In this document: positions 44,401 to 64,000 of the stretch, in pieces
Numbering within the stretch: the first letter of the stretch is position 1
Layout: each line of letters opens with the position of its first letter
Assembly: GCA_965649825.1 (NCBI GenBank)
Contig: OZ287694.1
Span: 1,363,197-1,427,196 of the forward strand
Origin: Penicillus capitatus
Taxonomy: Eukaryota; Plantae; Chlorophyta
Direction: 5' to 3'
DNA length: 64,000 nucleotides
Notes under the pieces: model-generated
What the model saw: only the letters and a program-made list of their open reading frames with translations
The model's database searches: none
Told to the model about the DNA's origin: nothing
Position numbers and translations under genes: made by a program

Positions 44401-44457
44401 TGGGGTGCTGCGAAACGACCAGCCGATCGCCTTCCGCAGTGCACTGCGCGGCCACAT
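41438..44457 (-). CDS. MSH1: Plant-type MSH1 (organellar MutS) homologue lacking GIY-YIG
   Basis: Collinear with plant MSH1: DPSTLPYLKSL, IVLVRSGEYYVAVGIDAVML, SYVYAL, ILDPPS, ILTGPNMAG|KSTVLRSI, VLIDELGKGTE, FATHLH and WKLLPGFCEESFGLEVA. Stop after RAQELVDSLT. Confidence 0.88.
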
Positions 44458-44523
44458 GGAATTGCACCTGTCCCATCATCCACTTCCTTTCGAATCGGCG
44501 TCTTCCTCGACAAAAAACGAAGC

Positions 44524-45568
44524 ATGGCAAGACGCGCCGTTCTCACTCTTCTCTGGCTCGTTATCGCCACGTTCTCACCCCAACGCGACGTCCTCGCCGC
44601 GTCCACGTCCGTCCTCTTTGTCCTCTCTCCGAGACCGCCATACGCTCGTGTAGTGGCCTGACTCTTCCGAAGGTTGTCTGCGAGAATACTGCGTCTGGAA
44701 AGTGAGAACACCTGGATGCCGTCATGGTGTGCTGAGTGCCATGCTGCCATGAGGTACTACTTAACAGACAGCGAAGGAAGAATGTGTGAACGGTCGTTCA
44801 TCGATACCGAGACAGCGTGCTGCACCCGTGGCACACAGTTCTCATGCGAAACCTGCGAGAACGATGCCTGCTGCGGCCGTTATGAAGACTGCGTCTCGTG
44901 CTGTCTCGCACCGAAGAATGACGCCTCCAGTCATTACCTGAAAGAATACCGGTCACACTTTTCTCACACACTCCATCGCTAACGTCATTGCGCGAAGTGT
45001 CAGGGTTCGTGGACGGGAGGATACGGGAAAGTGGCCCAACGTCTTCCAGTACTGTCAGGGAATCTGTCGAACGTGGAGGCACAGCACCACACATGAGAAT
45101 GCCTTCATCGACACCCGGCGATACTGTTACTCGGCATACGGCCGTCCCACGGTATTGCACTCCTCCGACCTCAGCGTTCAACGCATATCGCCTTCTTAGA
45201 TACCAGAGGCTGTCCCACTACCGACGCTGTCGGAAGACACCGTCGTCGTTGCCGGCGAAGCGGGAGAGAGTTGCGATGTCGTCTGCTCTCGTAGCTCCAG
45301 TCTTTGCTCAGTCGACGATTTCCCTGCCATCCAGAGCTGCAATATTCTTCGCACATTCTTCATCTGCGAGGCTGGATGCGGTGAACTGCACGAAGAGAAG
45401 GACGAGAGACATGAGCCCTATTACATCGTCGAGAACACCGAGAAGCGCAATCGTCCAGCCTATTGCGTCATCCATGCAACGAACGGTGAATCACCAGCCA
45501 ACGCTTGTCAGTGGAATAAGTCCATCATCCGGCGCATCTGTCCCTGTCGGAAAATAAAGGAGACGTAA
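44524..45568 (+). CDS. SPRING1: SPRING1/C12orf49-like Cys-rich protein with C-terminal MGAT5-like Cys-rich module
   Basis: Signal anchor, then TDSEGRMCER...CC...CETC...CCGRYEDCVSCCLAP...YCQGICRT...HENAF...YCY. A spliced last exon gives GESCDVVC...ACQWNKSIIRRICPC. Confidence 0.75.
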
Positions 45569-45673
45569 TGAACAGACATTGAGCATCTGATCTGTCTGTC
45601 GTACATTAACATCGCGCATCTTTCCGACGAGATCTTCGAATCTCTTACGCGTTTTCTCCGTCTTTTCTGCGCG

Positions 45674-47530
45674 ATGCAAACGGAACGCGTCTGTTGGTCG
45701 ACGCTACCCTCTCCGTTATGCGTCGCGCGTTTGTCGCCGAGCCAATGGTGTCCAAGAGGGTCCGTCGCCCGACGAAGTTCCTGGGGTGCGATCGACGCGA
45801 TTACCGTTCCCCAGAGTGGACCAGCACAGAACGCCATTGAGGAAGATATGCGCCATCTGTTCGAAGATTTCGCCAAAGGATTTCAATCCGTCTCATCTGA
45901 GGCCGAGACGAGCGGATGGATAACGGACGTGGAGGGGGAGATACCGAAGGAACTCACGGGGACGCTCTTGCGTAACGGCCCGGCGTTGTTCGAGCGCAAC
46001 GGCGTGCGCAAGGAGTTCCTCGACGGCGATGGAATGATCACATCTGTCGCCATTCGCGACGGCAAAGCTTTCTTTCGCAATAAGTTCATTCGAACGGATT
46101 CGTTTAAACGCGAAGAGAAGGAAGGCGATTTTCTCGACCTGTCGATTTTTACGGCCGAGGATCCACGCGTTGCCAAAACGGGCCGTCCCATCTGGCAGAT
46201 TCGCCTCTTCGATGATATCTTCAATGGCCCACCGTCGCCGAAAAACAACGGCGCCTTCAATGCATGGCACTGGGGCAACACTCTCGTCGCCGTCGATTTC
46301 GGTCGACCGTTTCAGCTGGACAAACAAACACTGGATACGACAGAGCGCATGGACGACTTTGCCAAGCACGATTTTACGGCGCATTCCCGGCTGATGACAG
46401 AGAGTGATGGATCCCAGCGCCTTGTCTGTTTCTTGCCTTTCGTCGACTGGGCCAAACAGGAGGCTGAAATCACCTTCTTTGAATTCGATGAGCAAGGAGC
46501 CTGTCTCTTGCAGAAGAAATTCAAATTTGCACCGGCTTACTTTCATGACCTCATTGTTACCGACAAATGGTACCCTCTGCATGGTCACTCTTTTTTGGAA
46601 TCTCACACAAGTGTGGCGCGCGCAGGTATATTCTGTTCGACTGTCCGATCAAGATGGACTATTTCCGGACGTTTGTGAAGTATCCTTTGGGACAGGTGGG
46701 GTTGGGCGATACCGTATCGGAAGATCGCGATCGTCCGCCGATTTTTCGTCTCTTCCCTCGTCGATCAGACGGCGACATGATCGAGATTCCGGTCATCGAT
46801 AAGCATTGCTATGCTTACCATCACGTGAACGGTTTCGATCTGAATGACGAAGGGACGAGAGTGGTCTTCGACACATGCACGTGGGACAACTTTACGCTCT
46901 ACTTCAAAGACATTGTCGAGCCCGACGGAGAGAGATTTTTTCCCAGAACACAGGTGACGAGGTTTACGCTGGATCTGGAGAAAGGCCATGCGACATCTGA
47001 AATGGTCAATTCACGACCGTGCGAGTATCCAACGGTCGCGCCCTTAGCGACAGGGACCAAGTATGGTTGATTCTCAAATGTTGATCTCGGCGAGGGCCTT
47101 TGCCAGGTACAAACACATGTACATGTCGAGCAGCGCTGTCCGATTTGACGAGATCAATGGCCCACTGCAGTCGTTGACGAAAGTGTCCCATGACACGGAT
47201 ACAAAAGAGACGAAGGAAATGAACTGGTATCCCGGAAAGAGGAGATTTGTGGGTGAACCGCTTTTCGTTGCTCGCGAGGGGTCAACGAGCGAAGATGATG
47301 GATGGATTGTTGTTCTGGTACACGATGGCGGCGAGGTGGCGAATTATAAGGAATGCTCGTGAAGAAGGTGGTGATGGAATTCTGTGTAGAGGTGTGGAAC
47401 GGGACTGGCGATTTTGGATGCGCAGGACATTGAAGCAGGACCTGTGGCGATGATGCGACTTCCAACCTATGTTCCCATGGGCGTTCATGGTTCCTGGACA
47501 TCTGACTACATACTGGGACCCGGCGTGTGA
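45674..47530 (+). CDS. Carotenoid cleavage oxygenase (RPE65/ACO family)
   Basis: EGEIPKELTGTLLRNGPA, FLDGDGMI, DFTAHSR, YFHDLIVT, YHHVNGF, RPCEYPTV, GEPLFV...EDDGWIV and PMGVHGSW. Confidence 0.93.
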
Positions 47531-47839
47531 AGACTCGAGACGCTCTGAGTGACAGGCGTCGCTCTTTTTTGGCAAACGGAAGAGAAGAAACTCATTCTTC
47601 ATTTTTACCTTGAACACTTTTGCTTTCGGGAAAAGTAAAAAATAATGGACGATTGATTTGTCATTGAACAATTCTGAGAGAAACGCAAAAAAGACACTCA
47701 GATAAAGATTAGGTCGCTTACTCCCTCTCTAGCGACCACGTACATGTCTTTTCATATCAACTGGGATGTTATACGCCGAACCCTCGACAGGAGGGATTTT
47801 CTAATGACTTTTGCTCTGCTGCTGATTGAACAGATCGTG

Positions 47840-48690
47840 CTACAGAATGTGTTCTTCGTCACGGATGTAGTCCCCGACGTCTGCTTGGTGCAGTGCCACG
47901 GTCGCCGTGGGATCGATGTCTCTGCACTGCGCTGTTGTGCGCACGGACACGGCGAAGCCCAGTGGGATGTCCGACATGCTGTAGACCACCACGCCGGCAT
48001 TCACTGGCATGTTCTCCGTTATCCTCCCCACTCCCGACTTCAGGATGTGGTGGCTGTACAGGAACTGCTGCTCGGCAGACGGCTTGACCCAGATCTGCAG
48101 CAGCACACGAAGATCTCAGAAGCAGGAGGAGCTTAAATCAGGCGGATGCAGTCATCACGAAGACCGATGGTCATCATCAGGGATCCGAGCTCCTCGGCGG
48201 AAAGCTGAAAAATGGCAGGAATCATGCCGCGCACGGCGGATCATCCGCGAGCCGCTGTTCTCTTCACGGGAGCCCTTCGCCCGAGTTCGCGCCTCACTTT
48301 GCAGACGGCGTTGTCGGCGAGCAGATCGAGGGCGCCGATCGTCAGGTGGAACTTCTTGCTGTGCGTGAACTTGCCGATGCACGTTCCGAGGCCGACCAGA
48401 TCTGCCCGGGGTATCTACAAAGAAGCCCAACTAGGCGCTGGACGCGGGACGTCGAGACGCAGGCGGACGTTCACGGCGCTCCGGACGAGGCTCTCCCTGG
48501 CGTAGAAGACCTTGTCCCTGTGCAGCCGGAAGCAGTGGCTCTCGCCGCCTCGCTCCGTCAGCTTGGAAAGGTTGGCGCCGACGTACTTGAGAAGCTTCTC
48601 GAAGACGAGCTTCGCCTCCTGAAGGGATTGGGTGTCTCGCGAAAGCGAGTCCAGACGCTTTGAGTCTACCTCTTCGGTCAGCGGTCGCAT
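47840..48690 (-). CDS. NIP7: 60S ribosome biogenesis protein NIP7, copy 1
   Basis: MRPLTEE|[14 protein letters not shown]...[10 protein letters not shown]...|[27 protein letters not shown]|[13 protein letters not shown]...[12 protein letters not shown]. Three introns. Confidence 0.95.
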
Positions 48691-48892
48691 CTTCCGTCTG
48701 ACAGCCCGCGGACGGTGGAAACGGGATCCGCAGTGTCCCTCGGCGCGAACGAGCGACTGAGAGGACAGCTGCTGATGGAATGTCGTATATAATGAGCTGA
48801 CGTGAGCCGCTGTTTGTAATTGCTACATTTTCTGGAGCTTTCAACCTCGACGCAGCACACTCCGTCTTCTTTGCCGTGAGAGTCTACCTACG

Positions 48893-49337
48893 ATGCGTAG
48901 AGGGCGACCGAAAAAAGTGACGTGGGAAAACATGAAAGAGGGACTGACGAAGGCCGAAATAAGTGTAAGCATCCTCGAAAGTGCCAGGCTTCGTTTCCAC
49001 GCGAGTTATCCCTCTCCAGGCGGATTTGAGCAGAATTTTAGACAAGAAAGTCGACCCGAAGGAAACGGGTCGGGTCGCGCAGCGTAAACCGTCCCGGAAG
49101 AACCCCCCTCGTTCGTTGGGGATCGAAGATGACGAGTTGTACGAAGTGGATTTCATTCTAAAAGAGCGGACGACCCCCGATGGGAAGAGAGAATTACTAA
49201 TCCGATGGAAGGGGTACGGCAAGTCCGAAGACTCGTGGATACCAGAAAACAATCTCTCCTTGCCGATGTCGGCCTATCCGTTTCCTGGAAAAAACAAGTC
49301 AAAGGGAAAAAATAATGTAGTGTCAAGAAATTCGTAA
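48893..49337 (+). CDS. Small AT-hook plus chromodomain protein, copy 1 (~129 aa)
   Basis: Exon 1 MRRGRPKKVTWENMKEGLTKAEIS, a GTAAGC...CCAG intron, then exon 2 with LYEVDFILKER...LLIRWKGYGKSEDSWIPENNL. TGTAA at 49369. Confidence 0.75.
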
Positions 49338-52300
49338 CTAACTAACAGCGACAGTAAACTGGAAGGCATGTAATCCCAACTAGAGAGAGAGAAAACCATT
49401 TCGTGTTAATTTTTCTCGTCAAGTTTTCTCGTTCTACGCGCTTCGAGCGGGCCGAAAGCTTACACAAGTAGTTAAGCAGGTATGAGTGTTGGAAGAATCT
49501 CGACGAATGCCGCGTTCCACTCACAAATCTACTCATCTGGTACTATGGTTGGTACCGTAACAACTTCATTTCTGATCATGAAACCGTAAAAATACTGTCC
49601 CGCCTCACTTGCAAATACGATACTAACTCTTAACCGAATGAGTTTCAGACGTTGTACAATTCATTGAGTTGGTATGTGCATAAACTCGATCAATGCACAG
49701 ATCCGATGACGAAAGCAATTAATTTATGTGTTCATAAGTTTTTTCTTTTGTGCACGATTTTTATTGAACCTAACGTATAACAACAGCCTTGCAGAGCTCT
49801 TTTTGTGGAAAGGTTACAAAACAGATTTATCGTCCGGTTGCTTATCATGTCTATGAAACTGTCAGAAGGATTGAAACGTCACATCGAGACTGCCTAGATT
49901 TCCAAGGGTTCTGCCTCCGAAGGGGCGCTCATAAGGGGTTCACTGTTACTTGTCCGGCCACATCCTGGGTATAAATCCGTGAATGTGGACATGTAGGAAC
50001 CTTTGCTCTGTAACTGTGAAAGCTTTCCTTTGACAGAATCTTCTGTGTCTGATGAGCATTAGACGACCTTGCGGTTTGTGTGGGTGTTGGAAATGCGGCG
50101 GTTAACCACCTATTGTAGCCCATCAAGGACGGTTGGGTTTGTGCGTAATTACCTTGGCGTTCTGGCCATCGGTCGCGACGGGTGTTAACCTCCGACTAAA
50201 ATTTCTACTAACCGTACTGCGATGGTTATGGAAAAAAATACTAAAGTTCGCTACCGTTAGCCCTGAAGGTCAGGGAATCCTCAACCATCCTGGATATTTA
50301 AAGGCAGCAGTTTCAAGTAGGATAACCCGTGTTCTCTGTATTAACATTCGTGTGCGTTTTCGTCGAAGTCGTTTACCTGTGTCTTCACTCAACTCATCTC
50401 GAATTCGTTCACACACTCCCAACAGTAGGATTCTTAGAAGTCTTCAGTAACTCAGGCAGTTAGATTGCGAAGAAATCTTGTTGAGTAGCCAGAGTGCCAG
50501 GCGGTGTGGATGAAAGGAATGATATGGACGACTGCCATTTCCAGTTGTTCTTTGCGCGACGTTTTTCTTCGAACTGAATAAGTGTGACGACCTTGTTTGT
50601 GAGGTGATTCATGCATCCGTAGGTAAGTCGTTCTGAGTCAATGAAAAAGTAACTGTTGGAAACACTCAATTGAGCTTGTTAGCCGCTTACTTGGCTTTAA
50701 GCACCTCTCTTATACTGTCTCTTGTAGCTAGTAAGGATTTAGGATAACTGATAAAAGCACGGACTCTTCCAGGGCGAACGAAAGACGTGACAACGACAAT
50801 GAACAGTTATTGACCCGTTACTTTAAATGCATCGAGCGTTGATATGCTTGGGTTGTTTTGGACACGCGTTTCGAACGACATGTTTAGTGAAATGAAGAAT
50901 AGGTATTTCATTGTTTTTGGAGAAGCGGTGGGTTTTGCAAGCGTTTTTATTCTACAAAAAACGCATCGATGCTTGTACTGTTAGATCGCTCAAAATGCGT
51001 TGCTTGAGTAGTGATGGCCATGTGAAGACTCGATTGGTTTTTGTACATTGCGGAAGAAGATGTCTGTGTGAATGTAGCATTGTGTTGTATACATGAAAAG
51101 ATCGCGACGGGGAGGCAATGCATGATGGTGATGTCTTGACAAGCGGCATGACATCATGTGGTATTTTGAGTTCCCGAACGAGATAATCTTATATTCGCTT
51201 CCAGCCAAGAACTACTATTGCAGTGCTTTTTTCCACGCGATTTGCGCCTAACGGAGGTTATCGGCTGAGAGTTCTTTAAAGGCCGTTGCTTGGTATCGTT
51301 GTAGGGAGTGTTATGGTCGAATGTTCTGAAAGTTGTGAGTCGTAGAAACAATGCGAATGGTTTCGTCCTTGCCTTGGTTCGAAGTTCCGGGTATGTAGGT
51401 GATGACGTAAAACCGCTTCAGTTCATCATGGCGAAATTAGAGATCTTTCGAGATCACACGAGCTGCTGATCCATGCAATATAATGATTAATGTCTTCGTG
51501 ACTTTAATGCTCCTCTACAGACATCTCGAAACTTCATAGACCGTCTGCGTTTCGTTTCTACTGGTACATCTCTATGAACTTTCCTTCTTATCCTCTTGAT
51601 CTTTTTGTTTTGGAAGGTCTTCAAACTTTAAGCATTAGAAGGTAAAGCCTGTTTCCAAAGAGCTCACCGTTAGGAGTCTTCTTCACATGCAATTCGCCTT
51701 AAACTACATTGCAATGGTATTTTTAGCTGATGTACGCGTATAGCAGGTAGTCCGCACGAATAACCGAAGTTTCCATGATCATGCTTCTGCTCATCATCTC
51801 CTTTTCCACTAGATTATGCTGTATTCGAGGCATGCGTTTTTTCTCGATGGCCCTATCCAGTTAACACTATCTATCATTCTTGCTAATGAGGTAATTCCAA
51901 CAGCTGTCCAAAAAACAATCTATCTAAGAATGCTACATGACTTGTGTAGTTGGGAATAGCTGGTCATACAAACCCAGGTCGCTGTCGCCGGCCTCGCAGG
52001 GAAAACGAGATCACTGCGGAAGTTTCACAAGCTTTCGGAGCAAGGTAACACTAGGTCCAGATAGTCCCTTAAATACTTGCGTGATGACGCTACTTCAGAG
52101 TCAGATGAATCAGCCCCACTGTCAGCACCACAGAACAGCGTCCCTAAACGCACTTGGACCTTGTCTGACAAGACAGTGAAGGAAGGCCCCCTAAGCAGAT
52201 GCCCCCTTGCATAACAAGACAGTCACATCGACAAGGAAATCTTGGCGACAGTCGCATGATTTTTCAGAAAATGCATCGCCACTTCAAGGCGTCGTTATGG

Positions 52301-52584
52301 GCGATGGATGATCAATTCCTACCAATACTGTAATGAAACAAACGGATGAGTAGACAAAGTGGAATTCATAGATAGTGTGAAAAAGTTGTGACGCGGCATT
52401 CCGATCACATAAAAAGCCTTCCTACTTATCCGAATTTTTTGCTCATAAATGATTTCCCATTCAAGAAGCAATCTGCACCACGTCATAAACCTTCGCCATG
52501 AAGTTTACGAACATTTGCAGCAAGATGAAAACGACGTATCCCGAACCGGTGTACTCACCCACTGGTGACGCATTTCTCGACCCG

Positions 52585-53731
52585 ATGACTCTTGTCCAAC
52601 GAACTTTCCCGCTAAACACGGATTGCGTCGAATTCTGTCGTGTTCGCGGATTTGAAAACCTTCTCGCCGTCGGTTGTTACGAACTCGACCTCCAGACCAA
52701 CGACCGACAAGGACAGATTCACATTCTTTGTTTGAAGCACGAGGATCATCACACTTCATTGCAGACAAACTGCAGCAACACTTGTTTGCCTGGCGTCCTT
52801 GACCTCAAGTGGTGTCCAGTATCACTGCAGCGCTGTGAGCTTAGTGCCGCCACTGCAGACGGTCAACTATACCTTTTCAATGTACCCTACACGTATCACA
52901 CCTCCAAATCCTTCAAGTCACGCAGGTTTCGGAAGGCGATTTGCGCATGGCGGACAGTGTCTCCCTCTCAAGCGCTCTGATACTATCCGTCGACTGGACG
53001 GCACCGACGCGGCTGGTGGCAAGTGCGTCGGATGGACAGCTCGCATGCGTTGCCGCGGCTGAATCATCCTTCGTTACAGACCGCACTTGGAAGGCGCATG
53101 AACTCGAAGTTTGGTGTAGTGCAACCAATCAGCATAACGTAAGACGCCCCATCCTCGGCAACGGACTCTCTTGAACCATCATCGCAGACGGATGTTGTGT
53201 ACTCTGGCAGCGACGACTGTTGCTTGAAAGGATGGGATACGCGAACAGGCTCGACGCCTGTTTTCACGGACCGTACGTCCCACACTGCTGGCGTCTGTAC
53301 GATTGTTTCGGATGTGCATAATGCGCATCGTCTTAGCACGGGCAGCTATGATGAGTTTCTACGACAATGGGACACACGTGAAATGTCGAAACCTGTCCTT
53401 ACCCAGAAAGTGCGGCTCTGATCACGTCCCGAGCGCTTTCGAGATGCGATTGGGACAGGTCCATTGCGGAGGCGGCGTTTGGCGTTTGAAGTGTCATCCA
53501 ATGAAGCAGGACTGTCTGGCAGCAGCTTGTATGCATGATGGTTTCAAAACGCTTTGTTCTATGAATGAACAATGGTCGATCGTACAAGAGTACAGAGCAC
53601 ACAGCAGTTTAGCCTATGGTATTGACTGGTGCTATGACCCGTCCAAAAATATCATCGCGAGTTGTTCGTTTTATGACAATCTCGTGCATCTCTGGGAAGC
53701 AAGCGGCGTCGCATCTCAACAAGAGAGATAA
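52585..53731 (+). CDS. DPH7: Diphthine methyltransferase DPH7/WDR85 (WD40)
   Basis: TDCVEFC...LLAVGCYEL, GVLDLKW, AHELEVWCS, |VVYSGSDDCCLKGWD, TGSYDEFLRQWD, GGGVWRLKCHP and SCSFYDNLVHLW. Confidence 0.9.
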
Positions 53732-53850
53732 ATTTCAAACAGTTTTTAAAGCACGCTTGCTTCTAGTGGCACATCAAATCAGGTCCTATAGTTGAGCGAC
53801 CGAATTCTACAGAGATGACAGAGTTATTTTGTTTTGTTATGTGGAGCTGC

Positions 53851-54872
53851 TCATTCAGCATAGTCCGGCGTCCATCCGTTTGGATTAGCATCTTTTCCGA
53901 GTCCGTACAGGATTCCTGCATGCTGCAGAGCACCTTCCACACCGTAAAAAAACGTCTTCACTAGTTTAATAAACGTCAAAGATGTCAACAGACTATCCGA
54001 TCCCGCCTAGAAAAGGATCCCAGTCTTATGTCTCCCCAGCAGCGGCATCATGTTGTGTCCCACCTGATGCTGTGGTCCGATGCGTTGAACTTGCAAAGCG
54101 TCTGCCACTCTGTTCAACCCTCCACGCAAGTTATCGCAAAACTTCATCAAATATTTTATGTCATACACCGTTGGAAAGTACAACTATGCGTACCACAAGC
54201 AAAATGAGGATGATGGCGAGAATGCACGATAGGGTGTTACCTTTAGAAGTTCGAAGAATTCAGATTCATCCCGTGGTAATGGTTGACAAGTGACGACTTT
54301 GAGCAAATACCCAAAGTCATAGCCGCTGTGGAACGTCACCCATTGCACTTTATCATTCAGCACAATCCCTGACGTCATTAGCAGCTCCCCAAATCGTTGT
54401 ACATCGATACCACGCTCTTGATTCTGCGCGAAGTCGATTCCAGACTGCTGAAGCAGATCTATACTGTCTTGGGCATAAATATCATCGCCCAGCTGAAACT
54501 CCCTGCATAACAGCTGAACATCCGAACAGGTCGATAGAAAGACAGTAACCTGAAATTGAACTGCCATACACAGAGCTCTCCCTCAATGATGGGCAGTCCA
54601 CCGTCAGCATCGGTAAAGCTCAGTCCAAGTTGTATTAGCTTCAGCAGGTCGACATTGAACTTGACCGTGAGATATTGATACTCTGGCGAATTTTTATATC
54701 CCCCAACAGGACGTACAACGACGCCTGGGAACTCCGTGTCCATTGCGACGTATGGGAACTCGTCCACGACGCCTTGCAGGAGCTCCATCTCTTCTTCTAG
54801 GTTGTCATCCCAGACTTCACGCACACGGAGGTATTCGCCAGCGGCTGTTCGAGTTGTGAGACCGCGCGCCAT
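53851..54872 (-). CDS. CAF1: CCR4-associated factor 1 deadenylase (CAF1/CNOT7), copy 1
   Basis: [32 protein letters not shown]|AGSDSLLT and GILYGLG. Three short introns; reading frame intact. Confidence 0.95.
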
Positions 54873-57800
54873 TCCGTAATGCTCCGACTCACAGTCGCCA
54901 CGAATCGCTTGAGAAACGGTGTCTTCGACGGAAACGAGGGTGAATTGCGCGAAATGGAGAGAACGAAAAATGAAAGCGTTAAGAGGGACAGGTTCTTGAT
55001 GGACATGTTCGCGACGCTTCGACGGTACCTTCTCCTCTCGTTTTGAACATGACGTGGCCCTGACCCAAATCTGTGGTTTCCACAAAGGGCGAGTCAACGC
55101 AAACAGTAGCGGATCGGAGAGGGCGAGTGAAATCTGTGGCACTAAAATAAGGAGGACGCGTCGTTTCAGCTGCTCCGACCCGTCGTGTACGGCAGTGCAG
55201 TAGTGAGTGGTGGTCCTCTGGGTCAAGGCTAACCTCGGACACAGAAGACGTAGGCATGCTACGGTTTGTACCTTCAGCTTTGTAGTTCAGTCACAATTTG
55301 GACATCGCGCCTGGCATCAGATGCATTCTGAGGGAATAATGGCAAACAGTCAGTCTCGTCGTAGTCCAGTCTCACACCTTTCTTTTCCACAATGGCGAAA
55401 AAGAAGCTGCTCGGAAAAGCCAAACAGTAAAGAGCGCGATGGCTGTTTCGTTAGTCCTCCTAGAGAAGCGACATAGCAATGTTATGTAAAGTGGACACAG
55501 GAGTGAGATAAGGTTCGGACAAACCAAAGTGCATCCAAGGCGTCATCAGTCTGGCAGACGTCGCGATTATTCCATCTCTCTTCAAATGACGCATTAGTCA
55601 GTTTCTTTCTATTCGATAGCTATAATGGATAAAGTGAGAGAAAGTGAGTGAGGCGTGGAGCGAAATGAATACTAAGAATGGTCAGGATGCTTAACGGCAA
55701 TGAACAAAGCAATCGGCAAAGCAAACGCTTACGTCCGTCCATGTTGTCGATGAGGCTATCAGAACAGGGTCTCACACTTCGAGGCCGCGTTCGTTTCCGA
55801 GGCGATAGTACCAGATAAATGCTACTTACTATCATTCAGGAAGAGCAATGCATCATCACTGGTTGGAGACGTCAGATCGAAAATGGGTGGGATGAGTGCA
55901 CAGTGCTTGACAAGTGGTAGCCGTCGTTCTTGTTCTTCAGATCAGTCCTTGGCAATGCACGACTTTGGATGTCTTATGAAACATTGATATTCGAAACGGG
56001 TCTCTGTTTTACAAAAAGTCGCCTGAACACTTGTACCTTCGAAAGATAGGTCTCGGTTTCTGCGACACGAGGCTATCAAATCTGTCAAATCGCCTAGAAA
56101 CGAAGGCTTTCTACGCATTTAGGCGTCCGGTATCGAGTGTCTTGAGTGTCCGCCCGACAGGACAATGTGATAACCATATTTGACAGGGCTCTGTTCGGCA
56201 CAGCATAAAACGTTGATGTGTTTTCTCCACGAAGTTCCGAGCGACAGACTTTCGAGAGAGGCAAGGACACTGAGCCGCCTTGACGCCGTTCGGTGAACAG
56301 CACTCTAAGATGACACGGATTCTTCGCGCAATAGAGTGCTTTCGGTTTCGCCCTCGACGTTGTCGCCGGCAGCTCTCGATATCCGAATAAAGGCAGTGTC
56401 ATTTCTGTAGGATAGATGACCTAATAACACGTTTTATTCCGCCAGTAATTCATGTCTCAGAACTCTGTACGACGATGCGGAATAATCGTCTTGAATGGCG
56501 TTACGATTGAAAAGGAATACAAACAGTAGGATGAAAGATTGTGTGTTTGTTCGTCTCAGAATGGTATCGTCCAAAACGCGCTCCATACAGTATTCAAAAG
56601 GCATGAGTTCGATTTGGCCCTTCTGGACGCCACGCAGGTTTTTGGGGTTCCAGAAGAGAACTATGGCGTTCGACATTTTGATCTGGTTATCTCATTATGA
56701 GTTTTGCAATCACACAAAAGAAGATCAGACGCCCATTTGCTGCGATCAGAGGCGTCTGCTATTCGTCTTGAAGTTCAGATTCTGGAACCGTCTGGAACCG
56801 TCGGTGGATGGAAAATGTGTTTCGCCGATGCTTGAGTAGAATCTGTCGTTCTGAAGATGTTGCGCTTCTGCAGCAAATAGATCGAAGTGTCTGCTCGCGT
56901 AAATAAAAAACGGCCATGAAAAGACGATGACAAGGTCCGTGTTTCAACACATCCTCGAAGAGGCTTTTCTATGAAGACGTTACTTGTATAAACAGCGTTT
57001 TACTGTCTGTGACGCAACTGTACATACGCTGATGTATGCGGGTCACCTGATGTGACTAGTCAAGCATGCTGATCGCACGCATCATCCAGATACCTGTAAC
57101 ACTACGGAAACAGAGGACAAGAATCTACTGAAGATAGCAATAGAACTTCCATGAAGGTAACCAACTATAGTACCTGAAGTTGGACAGAACTGCAGTTTCA
57201 AAAAAGAAGAAAAAAACACAGATCATACTTACAGGGTTGAACAACGAATATCTTTATAAGATTAGAGAAACGATATGATTATGAGTGCGATGACAGAAAT
57301 GTCAATTACCGACGTAGGCTTTAATCCTGTCGACTTAGATGTGGTGACATGGTATCGAAATCGTCTGGTACATGAAACAAATGGTTTGAATCTTTTTTGG
57401 CGTTTTCTGTGGGGTTCGTTGAAAGCTTTTTATCCAGCTATTTTTTTAACCCTCCTACTACCACAGCATCACTCTTACTCCGGGCATTCATTATAGCGCT
57501 GGCTGCGTCATCGTCAACGGTGGTGGCGTTTGAATCGACAGAATGCGGCGTAAGATTCTTTAGTTCAGTCACATCAGCTTAATTTTTGTATTCCCCGGCT
57601 TTGTTTCTGTGCCGTGAATCTCATCTCCTACTTCCTTGCCTGTTTCTGTCGTTTATGATGCTTCGGGAATGGTGTTCTGAGCATTTCTGGGCAGTTCTAT
57701 ACTAACTTAAGTTGGATTTGTCGTGCCTTTTGTCTCATCGATCGTTAAGCTTTCGCGAAGGGAAAGTATCATTTTCTTCTATGTTTGTTGTCTCCCGAGA

Positions 57801-60017
57801 AGTGTCTTGGGTGATATCACACTGTTTGTCTTCTACGTGTGTAATGTGAAAGTACTCAGTCTCATCTGATTTAAAGAGTCTTTTAAAACTGTTTAAGTAC
57901 TTTCGAAATCAGGTCGTTGAACTTGGCACAAGTTGAGAATCGCTTGACGAGTCCATGTCGTTGTTGCGCAGACGCGCAACAACGGACGGAAGAACGGACG
58001 AGAGGCAACGCAGAGGCTACAGATGAGATGACACGGTCAGTTATATACCCGAGGCAATCCACGGACGGACGTCACGTGGGAAGCTGCGACGTGTCCGGTC
58101 GTTGGTGCGGAAATCGCTGCGACCCTCCTTCGTCGATGGTCTTATTGTGTCTTTATTAGATGACCGGGATGAGGCGTTAACGTTTTTCTTGGCTTTTTAC
58201 ATCGTAAGTAGCCTTGATTATATTGCTTAGACTCAAGTTTGTTAGAATCGAGCGCTATGTTTATGATAGGTCTTATGAGTCATACGCCGCACCCGTCCAA
58301 ATGGAAATTTTTGCGAACGTAGATCGATGTAATGAAACGATAAGAGACGTCTAGTGTTCGATTGTTGATAGCTTGATCATTTGTCGGCGCTCTCTAAAAT
58401 TACGCGTCTGCGCGTTTAAAAACGGATTAACAACAAGGGCACAAACCCTTAGAAAAATCTAGAAAGTTCGAGGTTCAACAAAACGACGGTCGAATTCGTC
58501 TCTTCAACTCATCAACTTCATTTTTATTAATGATTTCGAAGGTTCTGGATGTTTCCGGCCCTATCGATCCCATCTGTCCCATCTTGAGCCGCTCACATCA
58601 TTTATCCAGTGCAAAAGTATATGAGGCTTGGCTTGTTTATTCGACTTGAGTTTCGAGAATACTTTGCTACCCTGCCCATTATTTGCCCTTTAAGCAAGAT
58701 ACAAACCTCGACATAATCGGAGAAATGGTATCATTTGCAACAATGTCTAGTGGATGGAGAAAAGTTCGGTGGTCTTGGTAATTCTTCGATTAGATTATAG
58801 ACTCGATGCCATGGTTAGAACATAGATTTTGACGTGTGGAAATTACCATGATTATGGAATATCCGAGGATTAAAGACACGAAAAGAACTTTAGAACGGTT
58901 ATACAGAAACTTCTTTGTTCAAGCTATCAAGAGACGGTGCAAGATATGCAAAGCACAGCTGTTTCAGTTTTACGTTAAATGATGGGCAGAATGAACGCAG
59001 GATTGGCACATCGGTAAAGAAAACAAAGAACTGTCACCTGGTAAAGAAAGCGGCGAACCGAACAATAATTGCAATGGCGAACGATCGACGTCGCTGCGAG
59101 CGATATCGTCGTGATGGCATTGACGATGACAGAGGATTCATATCAATCCAAGTCTGAAGAAGAAACATTAAGGCAAGAAGCCAAAAAAGATAAAGCTCAA
59201 GGAACAAAGTTTAATTAATAGCCAACGGTTACCTTCGAACATTTTCTTTATCCTAGTTGCATTAGATTTTGTTTTGAATAATATATCCAACTTAACAGGT
59301 TTTACTATTTTTGCTCTAGCTGCTCTAGTTACACCCTTCGAGCTTTAATACATGCCGTGCACACGGTTTCCAAACCTCGGTGTGAAAGTGTTGTACTCGA
59401 TCATGTATCGCATCGTTACTATTTATTGGCTTAAAACATCACGTCCATCGTCTAACGACTACAATAAGCAGGAATTGATAGCAGACATAAGCTAACCAAT
59501 ATGGATCGTTGCTTATACCTAGTAACTTTACCCCGAAGGTTAATCGAGGAACTCGGCTGCATTTATCATGCAGATAGATTAGATAAAGCGAAGGATAATA
59601 AAATGGCATCGCATCTCAATTGACTGGCACACTTTGTAACTTGCGAAGGGATGTTGTCTCCAACAGAAATGATTCCCATAAACCGTTATCATATCGTTAA
59701 GCTGCATTCAACAAACTACAACGTGTACTTCAAAGAGATCTGTGTAAATGCCACGCATGCATATGCAGATAGATTCTCGAGATATGATTAAGAAATTCGA
59801 ACAGCCATCAAACACTCGACATCACATTTCCACAGTGTAGGTCAATTCAGGAAAATCTACGGACTTGTAATGCCTCTGATTGGCCAGGGAGATAAATAGA
59901 AGGTTCTCCAAATACGTTAGAAGTAGTGTGACACGGATGCTTGACTATTTAAGCGGGTTATCCATGACAGCTAGAATCCAGACCAACTCGGAATCGCATC
60001 CTATGCGATAAAGCCTA

Positions 60018-60135
60018 ATGGGACAAAGTTGACGATTTTAGATACGCAGGATATTGAAGCAAGATACGTGACCATCATGCGACTTCAAGCCTATGTGCCA
60101 ATGGGCAGTGTTCATGGCTCCTGAACATCTACTTA
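60018..60135 (+). pseudogene. Decayed duplicate of the carotenoid oxygenase last exon
   Basis: gatacgcaggatattgaagca...atgcgacttcaagcctatgtgccaatgggcagtgttcatggctcctgaacatct versus gatgcgcaggacattgaagca...atgcgacttccaacctatgttcccatgggcgttcatggttcctggacatct. TGG has become TGA. Confidence 0.75.
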
Positions 60136-60477
60136 TACTTAGAACCACCCATCGGATGAGGCCTCGAAACCCATTGAGCTGAAGGTATCACAACTCCGCT
60201 TCTTGGCTGACCAAAGAATGAAATCCATTCTTTGTTTACTTAAAGCTATTAGCCGCTTCTGCTTTCGGAAGAGGCAAAGAAAATGGACAGTCTAGTCGTC
60301 AAGGAACGAGGCCAAGGAAATAAAGAAAGGACATTCGACCTAGATAAGAGTTTAGTCGCTCCCTCCTTCACGACTAAGTACAAGTCTCTTAATATAAACA
60401 GTAGATATTGACGAAGGCCTCCGTATAGAATGGATTTTCCAAACGTTTCTACTCTGCTGCTGATCGAACAGATCGTG

Positions 60478-61330
60478 CTACAGAATGTGTTCTTCGTCAC
60501 GGATGTAGTCCCCGACGTCTGCTTGGTGCAGTGCCACGGTCGCCGTGGGATCGATGTCTCTGCACTGCGCTGTTGTGCGCACGGACACGGCGAAGCCCAG
60601 TGGGATGTCCGACATGCTGTAGACCACCACGCCGGCATTCACTGGCATGTTCTCCGTTATCCTCCCCACTCCCGACTTCAGGATGTGGTGGCTGTACAGG
60701 AACTGCTGCTCGGCAGACGGCTTGACCCAGATCTGCAGCAGCACACGAAGATCTCAGAAGCAGGAGGAGCTTAAATCAGGCGGATGCAGTCATCATGAAG
60801 ACCGATGGTCATCATCAGGGATCCGAGCTCCTCGGCGGAAAGCTGAAAAATGGCAGGAATCATGCCGCGCACGGGCGGATCATCCGCGAGCCGCTGTTCT
60901 CTTCACGGGAGCCCTTCACCCGAGTTCCGCGCCTCACTTTGCAGACGGCGTTGTCGGCGAGCAGATCGAGGGCGCCGATCGTCAGGTGGAACTTCTTGCT
61001 GTGCGTGAACTTGCCGATGCACGTTCCGAGGCCGACCAGATCTGCCCGGGGTATCTACAAAGAAGCCCAACTAGGCGCTGGACGCGGGACGTCGAGACGC
61101 AGGCGGACGTTCACGGCGCTCCGGACGAGGCTCTCCCTGGCGTAGAAGACCTTGTCCCTGTGCAGCCGGAAGCAGTGGCTCTCGCCGCCTCGATCCGTCA
61201 GCTTGGAAAGGTTGGCGCCGACGTACTTGAGAAGCTTCTCGAAGACGAGCTTCGCCTCCTGAAGGGATTGGGTGTCTCGCGAAAGCGAGTCCAGACGCTT
61301 TGAGTCTACCTCTTCGGTCAGCGGTCGCAT
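60478..61330 (-). CDS. NIP7: NIP7, copy 2
   Basis: Same exon structure as copy 1; the only protein difference seen is E to D (LTERGG versus LTDRGG). Confidence 0.95.
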
Positions 61331-61536
61331 CTTCCGTCTGACAGCCCGCGGACGGTGGAAACGGGATCCGTAGTGTCCCTCGGCGTGAACGAGCGACTGA
61401 GAGGACAGCTGCTGATGGAATGTCGTATATAATGAGCTGACGTGAGCCGCTGTTTGTAATTGCTACATTTTCTGGAGCTTTCAACCTCGACGCAGCACAC
61501 ACCGTTCGTTGTCTCTGCCGTGAGAATCCGCTTAGA

Positions 61537-61960
61537 ATGCCTGGAGGGCGACCGAAAAAAGTGACATGGGAAAACATGAAAGAGGGACTGACGAAGGCCG
61601 AAATAAGTGTAAGTGACGTGTAGAGCGCCAGGCTTCGTTTCTACATAAGCTGTCCCTCTCCAGGCGGATTTGAGCAGAATTTTGGGCAAGAAACTCGACC
61701 TGAAGGAATTGGGTCGGTTTGCCCTTCGTAAACCGTCCCGAAAGAGTCCTCCTCGTTCGTTAGGGATCGAAGATGACGAGTTGTACGAAGTAGACTTCAT
61801 CTTGAAAGAACGGACGACCCCCGAAGGAAAGAGAGAACTACTAATCCGATGGAAGGGATACGGCAAGTCCGAAGACTCGTGGATACCAGAAAACAATCTC
61901 TCCTTGCCGATGTCGGCTTATCCTTTTCCCGGAAAGAACAAGTCAAAGGGAAAAAAATAA
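61537..61960 (+). CDS. Small AT-hook-like plus chromodomain protein, copy 2 (~122 aa)
   Basis: Starts MPGGRPKKVTWENMK, same intron position, chromodomain intact, TGTAA at 62011. Confidence 0.75.
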
Positions 61961-63917
61961 TGTGGTGTCAAGAGAACTATTATTAAACAGCCACAATGAA
62001 TTGGAAGGCCTGTAATCTCAATCTCTGATCAAAGCAATTCATCGTGTCTGCGCGTCCTCGATCGGCCATCTCATCACTCCTCGAACAAGTTTAAATCTTG
62101 TATAAAGATCCAAACATGATTTTTGGAAGAATCTTGACGAAAATGGCGTTTTGTTTACAAAGCCACTCGATCTGGCACGCAAATGTCTCTGTGTATCCAA
62201 CCGGACGGCTGTTTGGCGGTATCGGTGCAATCGATGGAATGATTGGCTAAAAACATGGCTTCATAGACGTGCAACGATCTTCAAAGCGTCGATACAAATC
62301 GACTTGCAACGTGTCATGTTATACACAACATGCATTTTTTAAAAACAATCTCTTCATCTCAAAGAATTCATTGAATGATTCTTCTTGTCCCGAGAAAAAA
62401 CGATGAATCTCCAAAGGCACACTCCCAAGACTTATGGTACAATGTTGGTTTTCGTTTTTTATTGTTTGTGAAGTTAGCTCTTTGACTTTCCTCGATTTTA
62501 AGCGCGGAAAATTTCTAGGAAAGATAAACGCACAAACAAATTCTCCCGATCCTCTAATGCACACGCCACTATCGAGAGAACCTCAAAGTTCTTAGTACAT
62601 TGTCATTCAATCGAGTCATTTATTCAATTCAACGACGCATCAAACGTTGTTGCCTCTTTTCCTCCAACACCTTCGTTGTGCATTTCCATGAGTTAACGCC
62701 ACTCACACAACAAACAATGCATCCAAGGATTGTTGGTTGCCTTTATGTGCTTGATCCACTATGCACATAGATCGATAAACCGTTAGACGGTTAGCGATAC
62801 TGAACTTCATCGTTATCGTTGCACCACGACTCTCTTCTTAGTGATAAATCTATTCGAAGGTATTTTGATCTGAACAGAGTCACAATTCCAGAAGCCATGT
62901 CTTCAGCGAAAGAGATCTACTGCCACGAGTCATGTCTAGATTCGCTGCAGCACAGGGAATTCTGCAATGTCGTCGAAGACGATCTGATCACTCGTTCGAT
63001 GCAACGTTGCTTTACGACTCGAATATCGTCATCCTTTTAGCTATCAGAGGACGCGTTAAACATGAGCGGCAATGATTGAAGGGACGCGCAGACATTGTCC
63101 GTTGATAGGGTCGAGTCGTTACGGCCGCCGCCGAAGTCGAGGGGTCCATAGCTTGCTTTAGCTTAGCTCCCTTGACTCTTTATTCATTGCGAACTGTGTC
63201 CATCGAGCTCTCGAACTCGACGTCGGACCAACGCGACCTGCTGATATAACGTAAGTCACGACGCGTAGGAACGGAACTCCTGAACGGCCGCATACGGCCG
63301 TTGTCTACTTTGGAAGCCGAAACAGCCGGTCCCTGAAAGACAGGACAGTCGAGCACAGACAAAGCTGTCAACAGAGACAACCAGCCGTAGTAGGTATCGA
63401 CGGTTATCTCGTCTCTACTTAAAGGACCGCGATGACGACCCCTTCTGAGACGATCCGTCCTGCAACCGACTGTGTTCGCAGACGTGTGTCAGCATCCGTC
63501 ACAATCGACAGAGTACGACGCGCGCCGAGGAATATCTGTCGCTTTGATGTGATGGCGACGGGCCCGTCAAGAAGACCGCGATTGACATTTTAACGCAACA
63601 GAAAAGCGACAGATAAAGCAGAACCTGCCGACGACCGCCTCTGCGGACGCATAACCTCCGGCGATTCTGTTTCTACAGAAGAATAGCAGGTGGAGGAGCA
63701 ATTGAGGACAGCTCGACCTGTCACATCAGTTAACGCTCCGAATCCGAAGACACTGCCATCGCCGATCGCCGTTTTTTCACGCCGTAGGCAAACGTGATTT
63801 ATTGTCAACCGTTTGAAAACACGTTTGTTTTCCAGGGCAATTCAAATTCGATTCTACTCTTGAATGATCTGCGACTATCGGAACTGTTACAGTTATTCTG
63901 TTTTGTATGCTGAAGGC

Positions 63918-64000
63918 TCATTCAGTATAGTCCGGCATCTGTCCACTTGGACTGGCATCTTTTCCGAGTCCATACAGAACTCCTGCATGCTGCAGTGCGC
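63918..64000 (-). CDS. CAF1: CAF1 paralogue, C-terminal end (runs off the window)
   Basis: Reverse strand reads [26 protein letters not shown] versus copy 1 [26 protein letters not shown]. The 3' flank 63800-63917 resembles 53730-53850. Confidence 0.8.
   Translation of the reverse strand, partial: ALQHAGVLYGLGKDASPSGQMPDYTE

Follow-up and report, generated by a model that had tools for sequence, protein, structure and literature searches.

Probable long-term concerted evolution of NIP7 by DNA-templated interlocus gene conversion in an old tandem duplication of a green alga

The window (the whole 64-kb stretch of Penicillus capitatus DNA analysed) contains two copies of the gene for NIP7, a 60S ribosome-biogenesis factor. 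They lie in an old tandem duplication, and sequence comparison argues strongly that DNA-templated interlocus gene conversion has kept them evolving in concert over a long time. The copies are almost identical over exons, introns and most of the promoter, the tree topology switches at the homogenised tract, homogenisation took place independently in two lineages, and the donor was genomic DNA.

The following course of events is proposed. An ancient tandem segmental duplication would have produced two units, most of the duplicated DNA having since diverged to or beyond recognition. Non-crossover, DNA-templated interlocus gene conversion would repeatedly have replaced NIP7 with the sequence of the other unit, and the two copies of the gene would therefore evolve in concert. 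The replaced stretch would take in 170 bp of a shared promoter, all exons, the three introns and 26 bp of the 3' UTR. The sister lineage has followed the same process independently, with a tract of about 1.5 kb that still includes the adjacent chromodomain gene. In the window lineage this gene probably left the conversion tract roughly at the lineage split; the tract would since have shrunk to 1.05 kb, its last full-length homogenisation apparently being very recent (about 0.3% divergence per copy).

The NIP7 genes and the homogenised tract

Both window copies of NIP7 are intact, four-exon genes on the minus strand. Copy 1 (47840..48690, 180 aa; exons 48690-48670, 48618-48469, 48414-48298 and 48094-47840) has introns of 51, 54 and 203 nt. 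Copy 2 (60478..61330, 180 aa; exons 61330-61310, 61258-61109, 61054-60938 and 60732-60478) differs from it by a single amino acid, D29, which is derived by comparison with the sister lineage. The 180-aa model matches Pfam pre-PUA_NIP7 (PF17833; 3e-23, 82 bits, cut-off 23) and UPF0113 PUA (PF03657; 1.4e-19, 70 bits, cut-off 24), that is, the family's order of an N-terminal pre-PUA followed by a C-terminal PUA (UPF0113) domain in about 180 aa. The full-length search returned 823 homologues, all named ones being NIP7 (best match 59%), and both genes are assigned to NIP7 on these predicted features. Bryopsis NIP7, a single-copy gene with other neighbours than in the window, has introns at the same three positions; no conserved NIP7 synteny with Bryopsis was found. 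In a scan of JGI metagenomes the NIP7 genes recovered were all distant (45-47% identical), and the closest further relative beyond the sister lineage was P0243 (83%); the Logan contigs for P0001 and P0005 proved to be transcripts unrelated to the locus. A snoRNA or another structured RNA in the introns was considered as a cause of the conservation, but Rfam matches were absent at 44-64 kb up to E = 1.

Self-BLAST of the window returned one repeat block, 47406-49379 versus 60030-62021 (88.4% identity), and a second match, 53822-53931 versus 63891-63998. In the aligned block a two-rate maximum-likelihood scan delimited a low-divergence segment (2*dLL = 371), 47814..48860 in copy 1 and 60452..61500 in copy 2, with 8 differences in 1049 columns inside it versus 269 in 982 columns outside. 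The initial annotation's count of about 8 sites in about 1.05 kb, introns and promoter included, is exact, except that the promoter is covered for the most part: the first 170 bp of the 202-bp divergent promoter of NIP7 and the chromodomain gene (48691..48892, between the ATGs at 48690 (-) and 48893 (+)) fall within the tract.

The differences between the two tracts are six substitutions and two one-base indels. They comprise 47827 T/C in the 3' UTR of NIP7, 48158 C/T and 48279 G/A in intron 3, the homopolymer indels at 48234 and 48287 in the same intron, 48553 C/A (E29D, the sole coding change), and C/T at both 48731 and 48746 upstream of the NIP7 ATG. Non-coding identity of the window copies within the tract is 98.4% and NIP7 dS is 0.000; the NIP7 introns differ at 4 of 310 columns versus 14 of 55 in the chromodomain intron (Fisher p = 1e-9).

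On the right-hand side identity falls from about 99% to 69% at 48860/48861, adjoining a 4-bp indel. The flanking DNA had been described as two-thirds identical, which is valid for the left flank only, because identity is 58-69% there (69% for 47378-47530, 58% for 47531-47813) and 69-96% on the right (69% for 48861-48892, then 96% in exon 1, 75% in the intron and 89% in exon 2 of the chromodomain gene). Homology between the units is lost on this side by about 49380-49540. The discrete boundaries of the tract and its homogenised neutral sites are both marks of interlocus gene conversion.

Duplication units and the sister lineage

Each unit has the order CCD 3' end, NIP7 (-), chromodomain gene (+), CAF1 (-). 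The units lie in direct orientation at a distance of about 12.6 kb, and between the NIP7 copies there are 11.6 kb of diverged DNA with other genes. The left end of unit 1 is the last exon (47378..47530, +) of an intact carotenoid-cleavage-dioxygenase gene (CCD, RPE65 family), with Pfam RPE65 matches on ORFs 45674 to 47362 and the stop TGA at 47528-47530. At the left end of unit 2 its counterpart (59997..60159, +) consists of the last ~45 codons, and tblastn detected no CCD homology upstream of it. This second CCD copy had been called dead; it is a pseudogene with an in-frame stop, but one truncated by the duplication breakpoint and not the decayed remains of a whole gene.

Chromodomain gene copy 1 (48893..49337, +; 129 aa; 55-nt intron 48965-49019; Pfam Chromo 6e-11) has an AT-hook-like N-terminus, and copy 2 (61537..61960, +; 122 aa; Pfam Chromo 1.6e-10) is intact. 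The pair differs at many silent sites, as was initially noted, since its dN is 0.042 and its dS 0.33. CAF1, the CCR4-NOT deadenylase subunit, lies at the far end of unit 1 (53851..54872, -; 286 aa, 3 introns, Pfam CAF1; homologues 77-91% identical). The 3' end of its second copy is found at 63918..64000 (-), where the gene leaves the window; it has 84% identity to 53822-53931, and its tail peptide is identical to that of the sister lineage's CAF1-2. CAF1 paralog dS is 1.27-1.36 versus an ortholog dS of 0.12 (0.39-0.49 for orthologs of neighbouring genes), and at a paralog dS of ~1.3 the tandem segmental duplication appears old. A WD40 gene copy was sought in unit 2 and none was found; 10 ORFs of the AT-rich spacers gave no Pfam match that would represent transposon relics.

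The sister lineage (ENA ERZ26696514, contigs ctg303802 and ctg303793) surfaced through a search with the NIP7 last exon alone, not through the full-length search. Its contigs are colinear with the window, both units are present, and all four of its NIP7 copies are intact. Tract identity is 99.1% between the window copies (W1-W2) and 97.2-98.0% between the sister copies (R1-R2), versus 87.4-88.3% between lineages for any pairing of copies. NIP7 dS is correspondingly 0.00 and 0.03-0.06 within the two pairs, and 0.25-0.29 between lineages. Quartet informative sites, counted as orthology : concerted : alternative, are 19:1:0 in the CCD tail, 19:8:7 in the left intergenic DNA, 0:106:0 in the NIP7 tract, 1:30:0 in the chromodomain gene and 25:12:7 downstream. 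All 106 informative sites of the tract thus pair W1 with W2, and paralogs are closer than orthologs there; the flanks group by orthology, and the duplication is older than the split. Because the sister copies are 97-98% identical mutually and about 88% to the window, between orthologous flanks, each lineage must have undergone at least one independent homogenisation since the split.

The homogenised tract of the sister lineage extends further than that of the window, over about 1.5 kb, and spans the chromodomain gene, whose copies are 98% identical (dS 0.04-0.07). The window chromodomain pair was also homogenised earlier, since its dS of 0.33 is far below the ~1.3 of CAF1. The two haplotype-like sister contigs have 43 variable sites, of which 4 are common to both paralogs and 3 of these 4 are tightly linked; the shared sites are one haplotype-shared site and three linked 'cross' sites, beside 13 paralog-fixed sites. 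Recurrent conversion of NIP7 in an old duplication, as initially proposed, is supported by the independent homogenisation. Its confinement to NIP7 holds for the window genome at present, but not for the sister tract.

A single recent event, either one secondary duplication or conversion or a copy-paste from a third locus into both units, would suffice for the window alone if placed about 0.3% divergence ago, and this genome is seen at DNA level through the 64-kb window. Such an account is nevertheless very improbable. Homogenisation was separate in both lineages after the split, and several events of differing extent are needed because the chromodomain pairs of the window and the sister lineage are far younger than the CAF1 paralogs. 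The initial annotation's alternative, insertion of a GC-rich NIP7 from elsewhere, also conflicts with the position of NIP7, which is the same in both units of both lineages, and with its between-lineage dS of 0.27, of the order of the neighbouring genes' values. The search for further copies that it suggested yielded a 90% last-exon protein cluster consisting of these loci and one short contig. A mobile or transposon-like carrier was rejected: at 47814/48860 and 60452/61500 there are no terminal inverted or direct repeats, and target-site duplications are absent from the tract ends.

An assembly, polishing or haplotype mis-join artefact, with one real NIP7 or two diverged ones behind the near-identical pair, is less credible still. 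A 1-kb repeat of 99% identity is a typical place for an assembler phase switch, and both indels are in short homopolymers. An independent same-species contig (L015) confirms unit 1 and the spacer, the exact-product look-up of the NIP7 last exon returned one place in it, and a block of differences between it and the window ends 6 bp from the tract edge; exact-product look-ups with the single-exon ORF, both NIP7 exon-1/2 ORFs and the unit-2 antisense ORF gave no match. Against an artefact, two sister contigs have the same two-unit layout with 13 paralog-specific fixed differences, and the tract edges differ between the lineages. The unit flanks are 31-43% diverged, far above allelic divergence, and the units are therefore not haplotigs; polishing would be unable to erase an intron divergence of roughly 25%.

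Conversion templated by cDNA could be considered for a housekeeping ribosome-biogenesis gene, with fungal ribosomal-protein pairs as a precedent (PMC6993855), but homogenisation of all three introns and of 170 bp upstream of the ATG makes a spliced donor impossible and genomic DNA the template, so this route has almost no probability. Extreme purifying selection on every NIP7 site, which the conserved protein might suggest (between-lineage dN 0.012-0.017), can be dismissed with similar assurance, since silent and non-coding sites are free to change between lineages (dS 0.25-0.29, non-coding identity only 81-83%).

Interlocus gene conversion is thus the preferred reading, and its mechanism is presumably double-strand-break repair from the paralog, with flank divergence now probably limiting the tract ends. 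Conversion may be continuing in the window lineage, to judge from one very recent event and the sister pattern. It is conceivable, though rather unlikely, that the promoter between NIP7 and the chromodomain gene is a recombination-initiation hotspot, with the paralogous unit serving as template for the repair of its breaks, perhaps in mitotic nuclei of a multinucleate, siphonous alga. Such a hotspot could have driven perpetual homogenisation and a 'runaway' of GC-biased gene conversion (gBGC) to a GC3 of about 0.85 over a dS of more than ~1.3.

Base composition of the tract

The elevated GC content initially reported for NIP7 is upheld. GC is 59.5% in the tract (65% in the peak 300-nt window) and 61% in the NIP7 CDS, versus 53% in CCD, 48% in the CAF1 gene and 43-46% in the spacers; a tract raised over its neighbouring DNA is the pattern expected of gBGC. 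NIP7 GC3 is 0.845 versus a mean of 0.615 (sd 0.035, maximum 0.66) for 13 control ORFs (z = 6.6). Among relatives it is likewise high in the sister lineage (0.85-0.87) and ordinary in the single-copy Bryopsis gene (0.655; neighbour 0.62). Chromodomain GC3 is 0.66-0.67 where the gene is still converted versus 0.54-0.60 where it has escaped, control genes being equal in both lineages.

Fixed differences between the window and sister lineages, counted as sister-strong : window-strong, are 52:30 in the NIP7 tract and 20:8 in the chromodomain gene (sum 72:38), versus 1275:1230 over the 17.6-kb control alignment. These counts are unpolarised and the bias is unproven, because the comparison is of two lineages only; the 20:8 asymmetry could equally represent strong-to-weak (S>W) change in the window lineage, if homogenisation of the chromodomain copies of the window came later than the split. 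The excess in the converted block is far greater at third codon positions than in introns. Variants within lineages are mainly S>W (26 versus 12), opposite to the standing composition. The GC bias of conversion claimed at the outset is therefore consistent with several observations but only suggested by them, and it is with moderate confidence that GC-biased conversion could be regarded as contributing to the very high NIP7 GC3.

Codon-usage selection, or another gene-specific composition effect, could instead be the main cause of this GC3; the possibility is a serious one, although it is somewhat doubtful. NIP7 intron and promoter GC is 0.55-0.65, and GC3 exceeds it by ~0.25 compared with roughly 0.1 in other genes, which suggests some codon-level selection. 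At third positions T is more strongly depleted than A, and the high GC3 is already present in both lineages and is therefore old. This explanation is opposed by the single-copy Bryopsis NIP7, without GC3 enrichment over its neighbour, by tract non-coding DNA 10-15 points GC-richer than the surrounding spacers, and by a chromodomain GC3 that is higher precisely where conversion persists. The strong/weak asymmetry is specific to the converted block, and the NIP7 protein is poor in FYMINK residues, of which only two of 112 homologues have fewer.

Related systems and significance

Ribosomal DNA forms a many-copy head-to-tail array that is homogenised largely by unequal crossing-over. NIP7 resembles it in the concerted evolution of a ribosome-related locus, and to this extent the initial term 'rDNA-like' applies loosely; it does not extend to array homogenisation, the present case being apparently a two-copy, non-crossover conversion. 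An array was rejected for the window, where the 64 kb contain two copies only, no tandem repeats, and diverged or non-homologous intervening DNA. With copies 11.6 kb apart, a crossover would delete or duplicate the intervening genes.

Ribosomal-protein duplicates of fungi (PMC6993855) and plants (PMC4679983) are likewise copies of translation-machinery genes that are near-identical long after duplication, in parallel in separate lineages, which is credited to repeated interlocus gene conversion. Unlike these, NIP7 is an assembly factor, with its copies in tandem instead of being dispersed or ohnologous. Homogenisation in the fungal pairs is restricted to the coding sequence, the introns and flanks having diverged, from which a cDNA donor was inferred (PMC6993855); in NIP7, by contrast, introns and promoter are homogenised from genomic DNA. 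Paralogs group by species, as here, in yeast histone duplicates (PMC4700949) and in the theory of duplicated-gene conversion (PMC3924837), where tract ends are set by the loss of flanking homology and 'escape' is followed by divergence, as in the chromodomain gene. Unlike the yeast histones (PMC4700949), the present case is in a genome of siphonous-green-alga type, and the escape of one member of a divergently transcribed pair is directly visible across two lineages. Sex-chromosome palindrome arms (PMC8981503) and human duplicates (10.1101/135152) also combine more than 99% identity with raised GC, and variants newly arising in them are skewed towards S>W although the standing composition is rich in GC. 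Those systems are outgroup-polarised with large samples, unlike NIP7, where the bias is only suggested by about 110 fixed differences.

The process itself is well known and no new mechanism is involved; the pair is a new and clean example, of unusual clarity because the sister lineage did the same independently. An age of the paralogs based on NIP7 identity only would err by orders of magnitude, and NIP7 gene trees would mislead orthology calls. The 1-kb repeat of 99% identity is a likely assembler phase-switch site and a likely site of rearrangement between the units. If the hotspot reading is true, the haplotype-difference block ending 6 bp from the tract edge marks a recombination event, and the locus becomes a natural two-lineage system in which to measure how conversion tracts shrink and how strong gBGC is in green algae. 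One 2-kb core contains three states: converted now (NIP7, in both lineages), converted in the sister lineage and escaped here (the chromodomain gene), and never or long ago converted (CAF1, the CCD fragment and the spacers). It allows estimates, in an under-studied algal group, of the persistence of concerted evolution, of tract shrinkage as flanks diverge, and of GC bias.

The duplicated units and the edges of the NIP7 tract

The window contains a sole duplicated block, 47406-49379 and 60030-62021 (88.4% identity), detected by a repeat scan and self-BLAST together with a short second match (53822-53931 and 63891-63998). Sliding identity on the global alignment forms a 98-100% plateau with far lower shoulders on both sides. 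A two-rate likelihood scan places this plateau at 47814-48860 and 60452-61500, exactly the near-identical NIP7 tract of the initial annotation. The approximately eight differing sites claimed there were counted as 8 in 1049 columns (6 substitutions and 2 length changes of one base each, the latter in short homopolymers), and the remainder of the block contains 269 differences in 982 columns. Both edges are abrupt: on the left a few bases suffice for identity to fall to ~55%, and on the right it drops to 69% beside a 4-bp indel. The tract takes in NIP7 together with 26 bp beyond its stop codon and 170 bp ahead of its ATG.

NIP7 is normally a single-copy gene. Here each tract carries one intact minus-strand copy, whose four exons encode 180 aa and are separated by introns of 51, 54 and 203-205 nt. 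Both Pfam NIP7 domains are present, the homologues are hundreds of NIP7 proteins, and all three intron positions coincide with those of Bryopsis NIP7. The lengths of introns 1 (48619-48669) and 2 (48415-48468) are each divisible by three; retention of intron 1, which is free of stop codons, would add 17 residues, and a naive ORF reading gives 197 aa.

The chromodomain gene is on the opposite strand, with its start 202 bp away from the ATG of NIP7, and encodes 122-129 aa, with one 55-nt intron; this head-to-head arrangement of NIP7 and a very small chromodomain protein is found in both lineages compared below. The N-termini of the window proteins, MRRGRPKK (48893-48925) and MPGGRPKK (61537-61569), place an AT-hook-like GRP core before the chromodomain.

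The carotenoid-cleavage-dioxygenase gene (CCD, RPE65 family) is intact to the left of unit 1. Its second copy, described earlier as dead, does have a stop inside, and what is left in unit 2 is the final ~45 codons with nothing of CCD upstream, which puts the breakpoint of the duplication at the final CCD intron/exon. A minus-strand gene for the CAF1 deadenylase follows further right in both units, copy 2 extending past the window end (best matches: 91% to a metatranscriptome or Logan sequence, 82% to a EukProt protein, 77% to Bryopsis). The CAF1 matches and the 51% GC of the window suggest a siphonous green alga of the Bryopsidales, and Ostreobium (52.4% GC, diploid; 10.1101/2020.07.21.211367) would fit. 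A WD40-repeat gene (52498-53731) separates the chromodomain gene from CAF1 in unit 1; no trace of it was found in unit 2, where the interval is 1.9 kb vs 4.5 kb. Searches of the NIP7 locus for terminal repeats, target-site duplications, structured RNAs and tandem arrays found none. The AT-rich stretches 49400-52400 and 55300-60000 (43% GC) are without notable ORFs, Pfam matches, tandem repeats or Rfam matches; the first 46 kb of the window is gene-dense with 50-58% GC.

Homogenisation in two lineages

A sister lineage came to light when only the last NIP7 exon served as the protein query; its 88-aa product is 98% identical to that of the window. The 90% cluster of this product has four members, two of them on long contigs of the ENA assembly ERZ26696514 (ctg303802, 154x, and ctg303793, 149x; Ra and Rb). 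The contigs share 98.3-99.1% identity and are either haplotypes or strains; each carries the product twice, ~13.4 kb apart. Both units and the intervening unique DNA are colinear between these contigs and the window (75-84% nucleotide identity), and therefore the duplication is older than the lineage split.

In an alignment of the two window and four sister copies, the NIP7 tract is 99.1% identical between the window copies, 97.2-98.0% between those of the sister and 87.4-88.3% between window and sister in any pairing (dS 0.25-0.29; control genes 0.39-0.49). Quartet sites supporting orthology, concerted evolution and the alternative number 19, 1 and 0 in the CCD tail, 19, 8 and 7 in the left intergenic DNA, 0, 106 and 0 in the NIP7 tract, 1, 30 and 0 in the chromodomain gene, and 25, 12 and 7 downstream of it. 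This switch of topology along the locus is the signature of concerted evolution, and each lineage must have undergone homogenisation on its own. The homogenised segment of the sister is longer (~1.5 kb), begins ~35 bp further left and ends at the chromodomain stop codon; its chromodomain paralogs have dS 0.04-0.07.

The sister contigs show 13 paralog-fixed differences, 1 haplotype-shared site and 3 tightly linked sites in swapped state, and the shared and swapped sites are what exchange on a population time-scale would give. The swapped trio lies in NIP7 intron 2, equivalent to window 48420-48443 (copy 1 of Ra equals copy 2 of Rb, and vice versa), and would represent either a short shared polymorphism or reciprocal exchange.

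CAF1 paralogs have dS 1.27-1.36, dN 0.11 and introns at chance identity, vs dS 0.12 for the orthologs; the duplication is several times older than the split. The chromodomain pair of the window, both intact, differs at many silent sites, as had been noted (dS 0.33, dN 0.042, intron identity 75%). This dS is far below that of the CAF1 paralogs and slightly below the between-lineage values (0.40-0.51), which implies homogenisation for most of its history and escape roughly when the lineages separated. The unequal ages and extents across NIP7, the chromodomain gene and CAF1 require several events, and the earlier description of gene conversion as "recurrent" is justified. Polarised by the sister, the six NIP7 substitutions are derived three per copy; this corresponds to about 0.3% per copy since the last full-length homogenisation, and the process appears to be continuing.

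In the 32 bp from the tract edge to the chromodomain ATG (48861-48892), the sister resembles window copy 2 (84%) and not copy 1 (69%). Inside the chromodomain gene the likeness is reversed (87% for copy 1, 83% for copy 2), and these opposite patterns suggest a mosaic of older conversion events. CAF1 copy 1 (53851-54872, Ra 16193-17213) has dS 0.118 and dN 0.009 between lineages with introns just 75% identical. This dS is unusually low vs the 0.39-0.49 of the neighbouring genes, and CAF1 synonymous sites look constrained.

GC content of NIP7

The GC elevation attributed to NIP7 is real and is mostly a third-position effect: GC3 is 0.845 vs 0.615±0.035 in 13 control ORFs (z = 6.6), with both C and G raised at fourfold sites. 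NIP7 introns and promoter have 55-65% GC, spacers 43-46%, CAF1 introns 45-53% and the window 51%. High NIP7 GC3 is common to both lineages, and control genes have equal GC3 between them.

GC-biased gene conversion (gBGC) probably contributes to this elevation. Single-copy Bryopsis NIP7 is not GC3-enriched (0.655 vs 0.62 in a neighbour), chromodomain GC3 is 0.66-0.67 where conversion persists and 0.54-0.60 where the gene has escaped, and the NIP7 protein is low in FYMINK residues. New variants are mainly S>W (26:12), contrary to the standing composition. The fixed-difference asymmetry, unpolarised, totals 72:38 in the converted block, vs 1275:1230 in 17.6 kb of controls. Several observations fit the GC bias proposed for the conversion. 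Codon-level selection is suggested too, since the third-position excess of NIP7 far exceeds its non-coding excess.

Alternative explanations, mechanism and related systems

An assembly artefact could make the copies alike by haplotype mis-join or polishing. In an independent same-species contig (ENA ERZ25074695, ctg340529_34x_l), exact-product look-up gives the 88-aa last-exon ORF at one place, and the window has two identical ORFs (the second at 60478-60744); the comparison with this contig covered unit 1 and the spacer (window 37844-58105), where identity is 99.71%, with no difference inside the unit-1 tract. The unit flanks, 31-43% diverged, exclude a mis-join, polishing is unable to remove ~25% intron divergence, and the same architecture occurs on the two independent sister contigs. 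Of the 58 differences of the same-species contig in 20.3 kb, 55 fall in one 6.1-kb block (41705-47808), which stops 6 bp short of the left tract edge; the next 10.3 kb has 3. The block end could mark a boundary at the repeat, either of a haplotype block or of loss of heterozygosity, or could reflect a phase switch by the assembler.

Selection on NIP7 cannot account for the identity of the window copies: dS is 0.000 with one amino-acid change, and introns and upstream DNA are 98.4% identical, whereas the intact chromodomain neighbour has diverged (introns, Fisher p = 1e-9). Unequal crossing-over is ruled out by the genes between the units, which are direct repeats, and by the diverged intervening DNA; the same features indicate non-crossover conversion.

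On the sequence comparisons, the NIP7 duplicates are best described as undergoing interlocus gene conversion with long-term concerted evolution. Conversion of introns and promoter establishes a genomic DNA donor, unlike fungal ribosomal-protein paralogs, where the coding sequence alone is homogenised and a cDNA donor was inferred (PMC6993855). The tract ends coincide with the collapse of flanking identity. Conversion requires flanking homology, and diverging flanks lead to shorter tracts (PMC3924837); loss of flanking homology may have set the tract ends here, with shrinkage as the flanks diverged.

Such conversion is well known in yeast ribosomal-protein and histone paralogs, plant duplicates and sex-chromosome palindromes (PMC6993855, PMC4700949, PMC3924838, PMC8981503). 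New here are the gene, the organism group and a clean comparison of two lineages, in one of which the tract has shrunk. The NIP7 locus is useful as a model, and it calls for caution in dating and in orthology inference.
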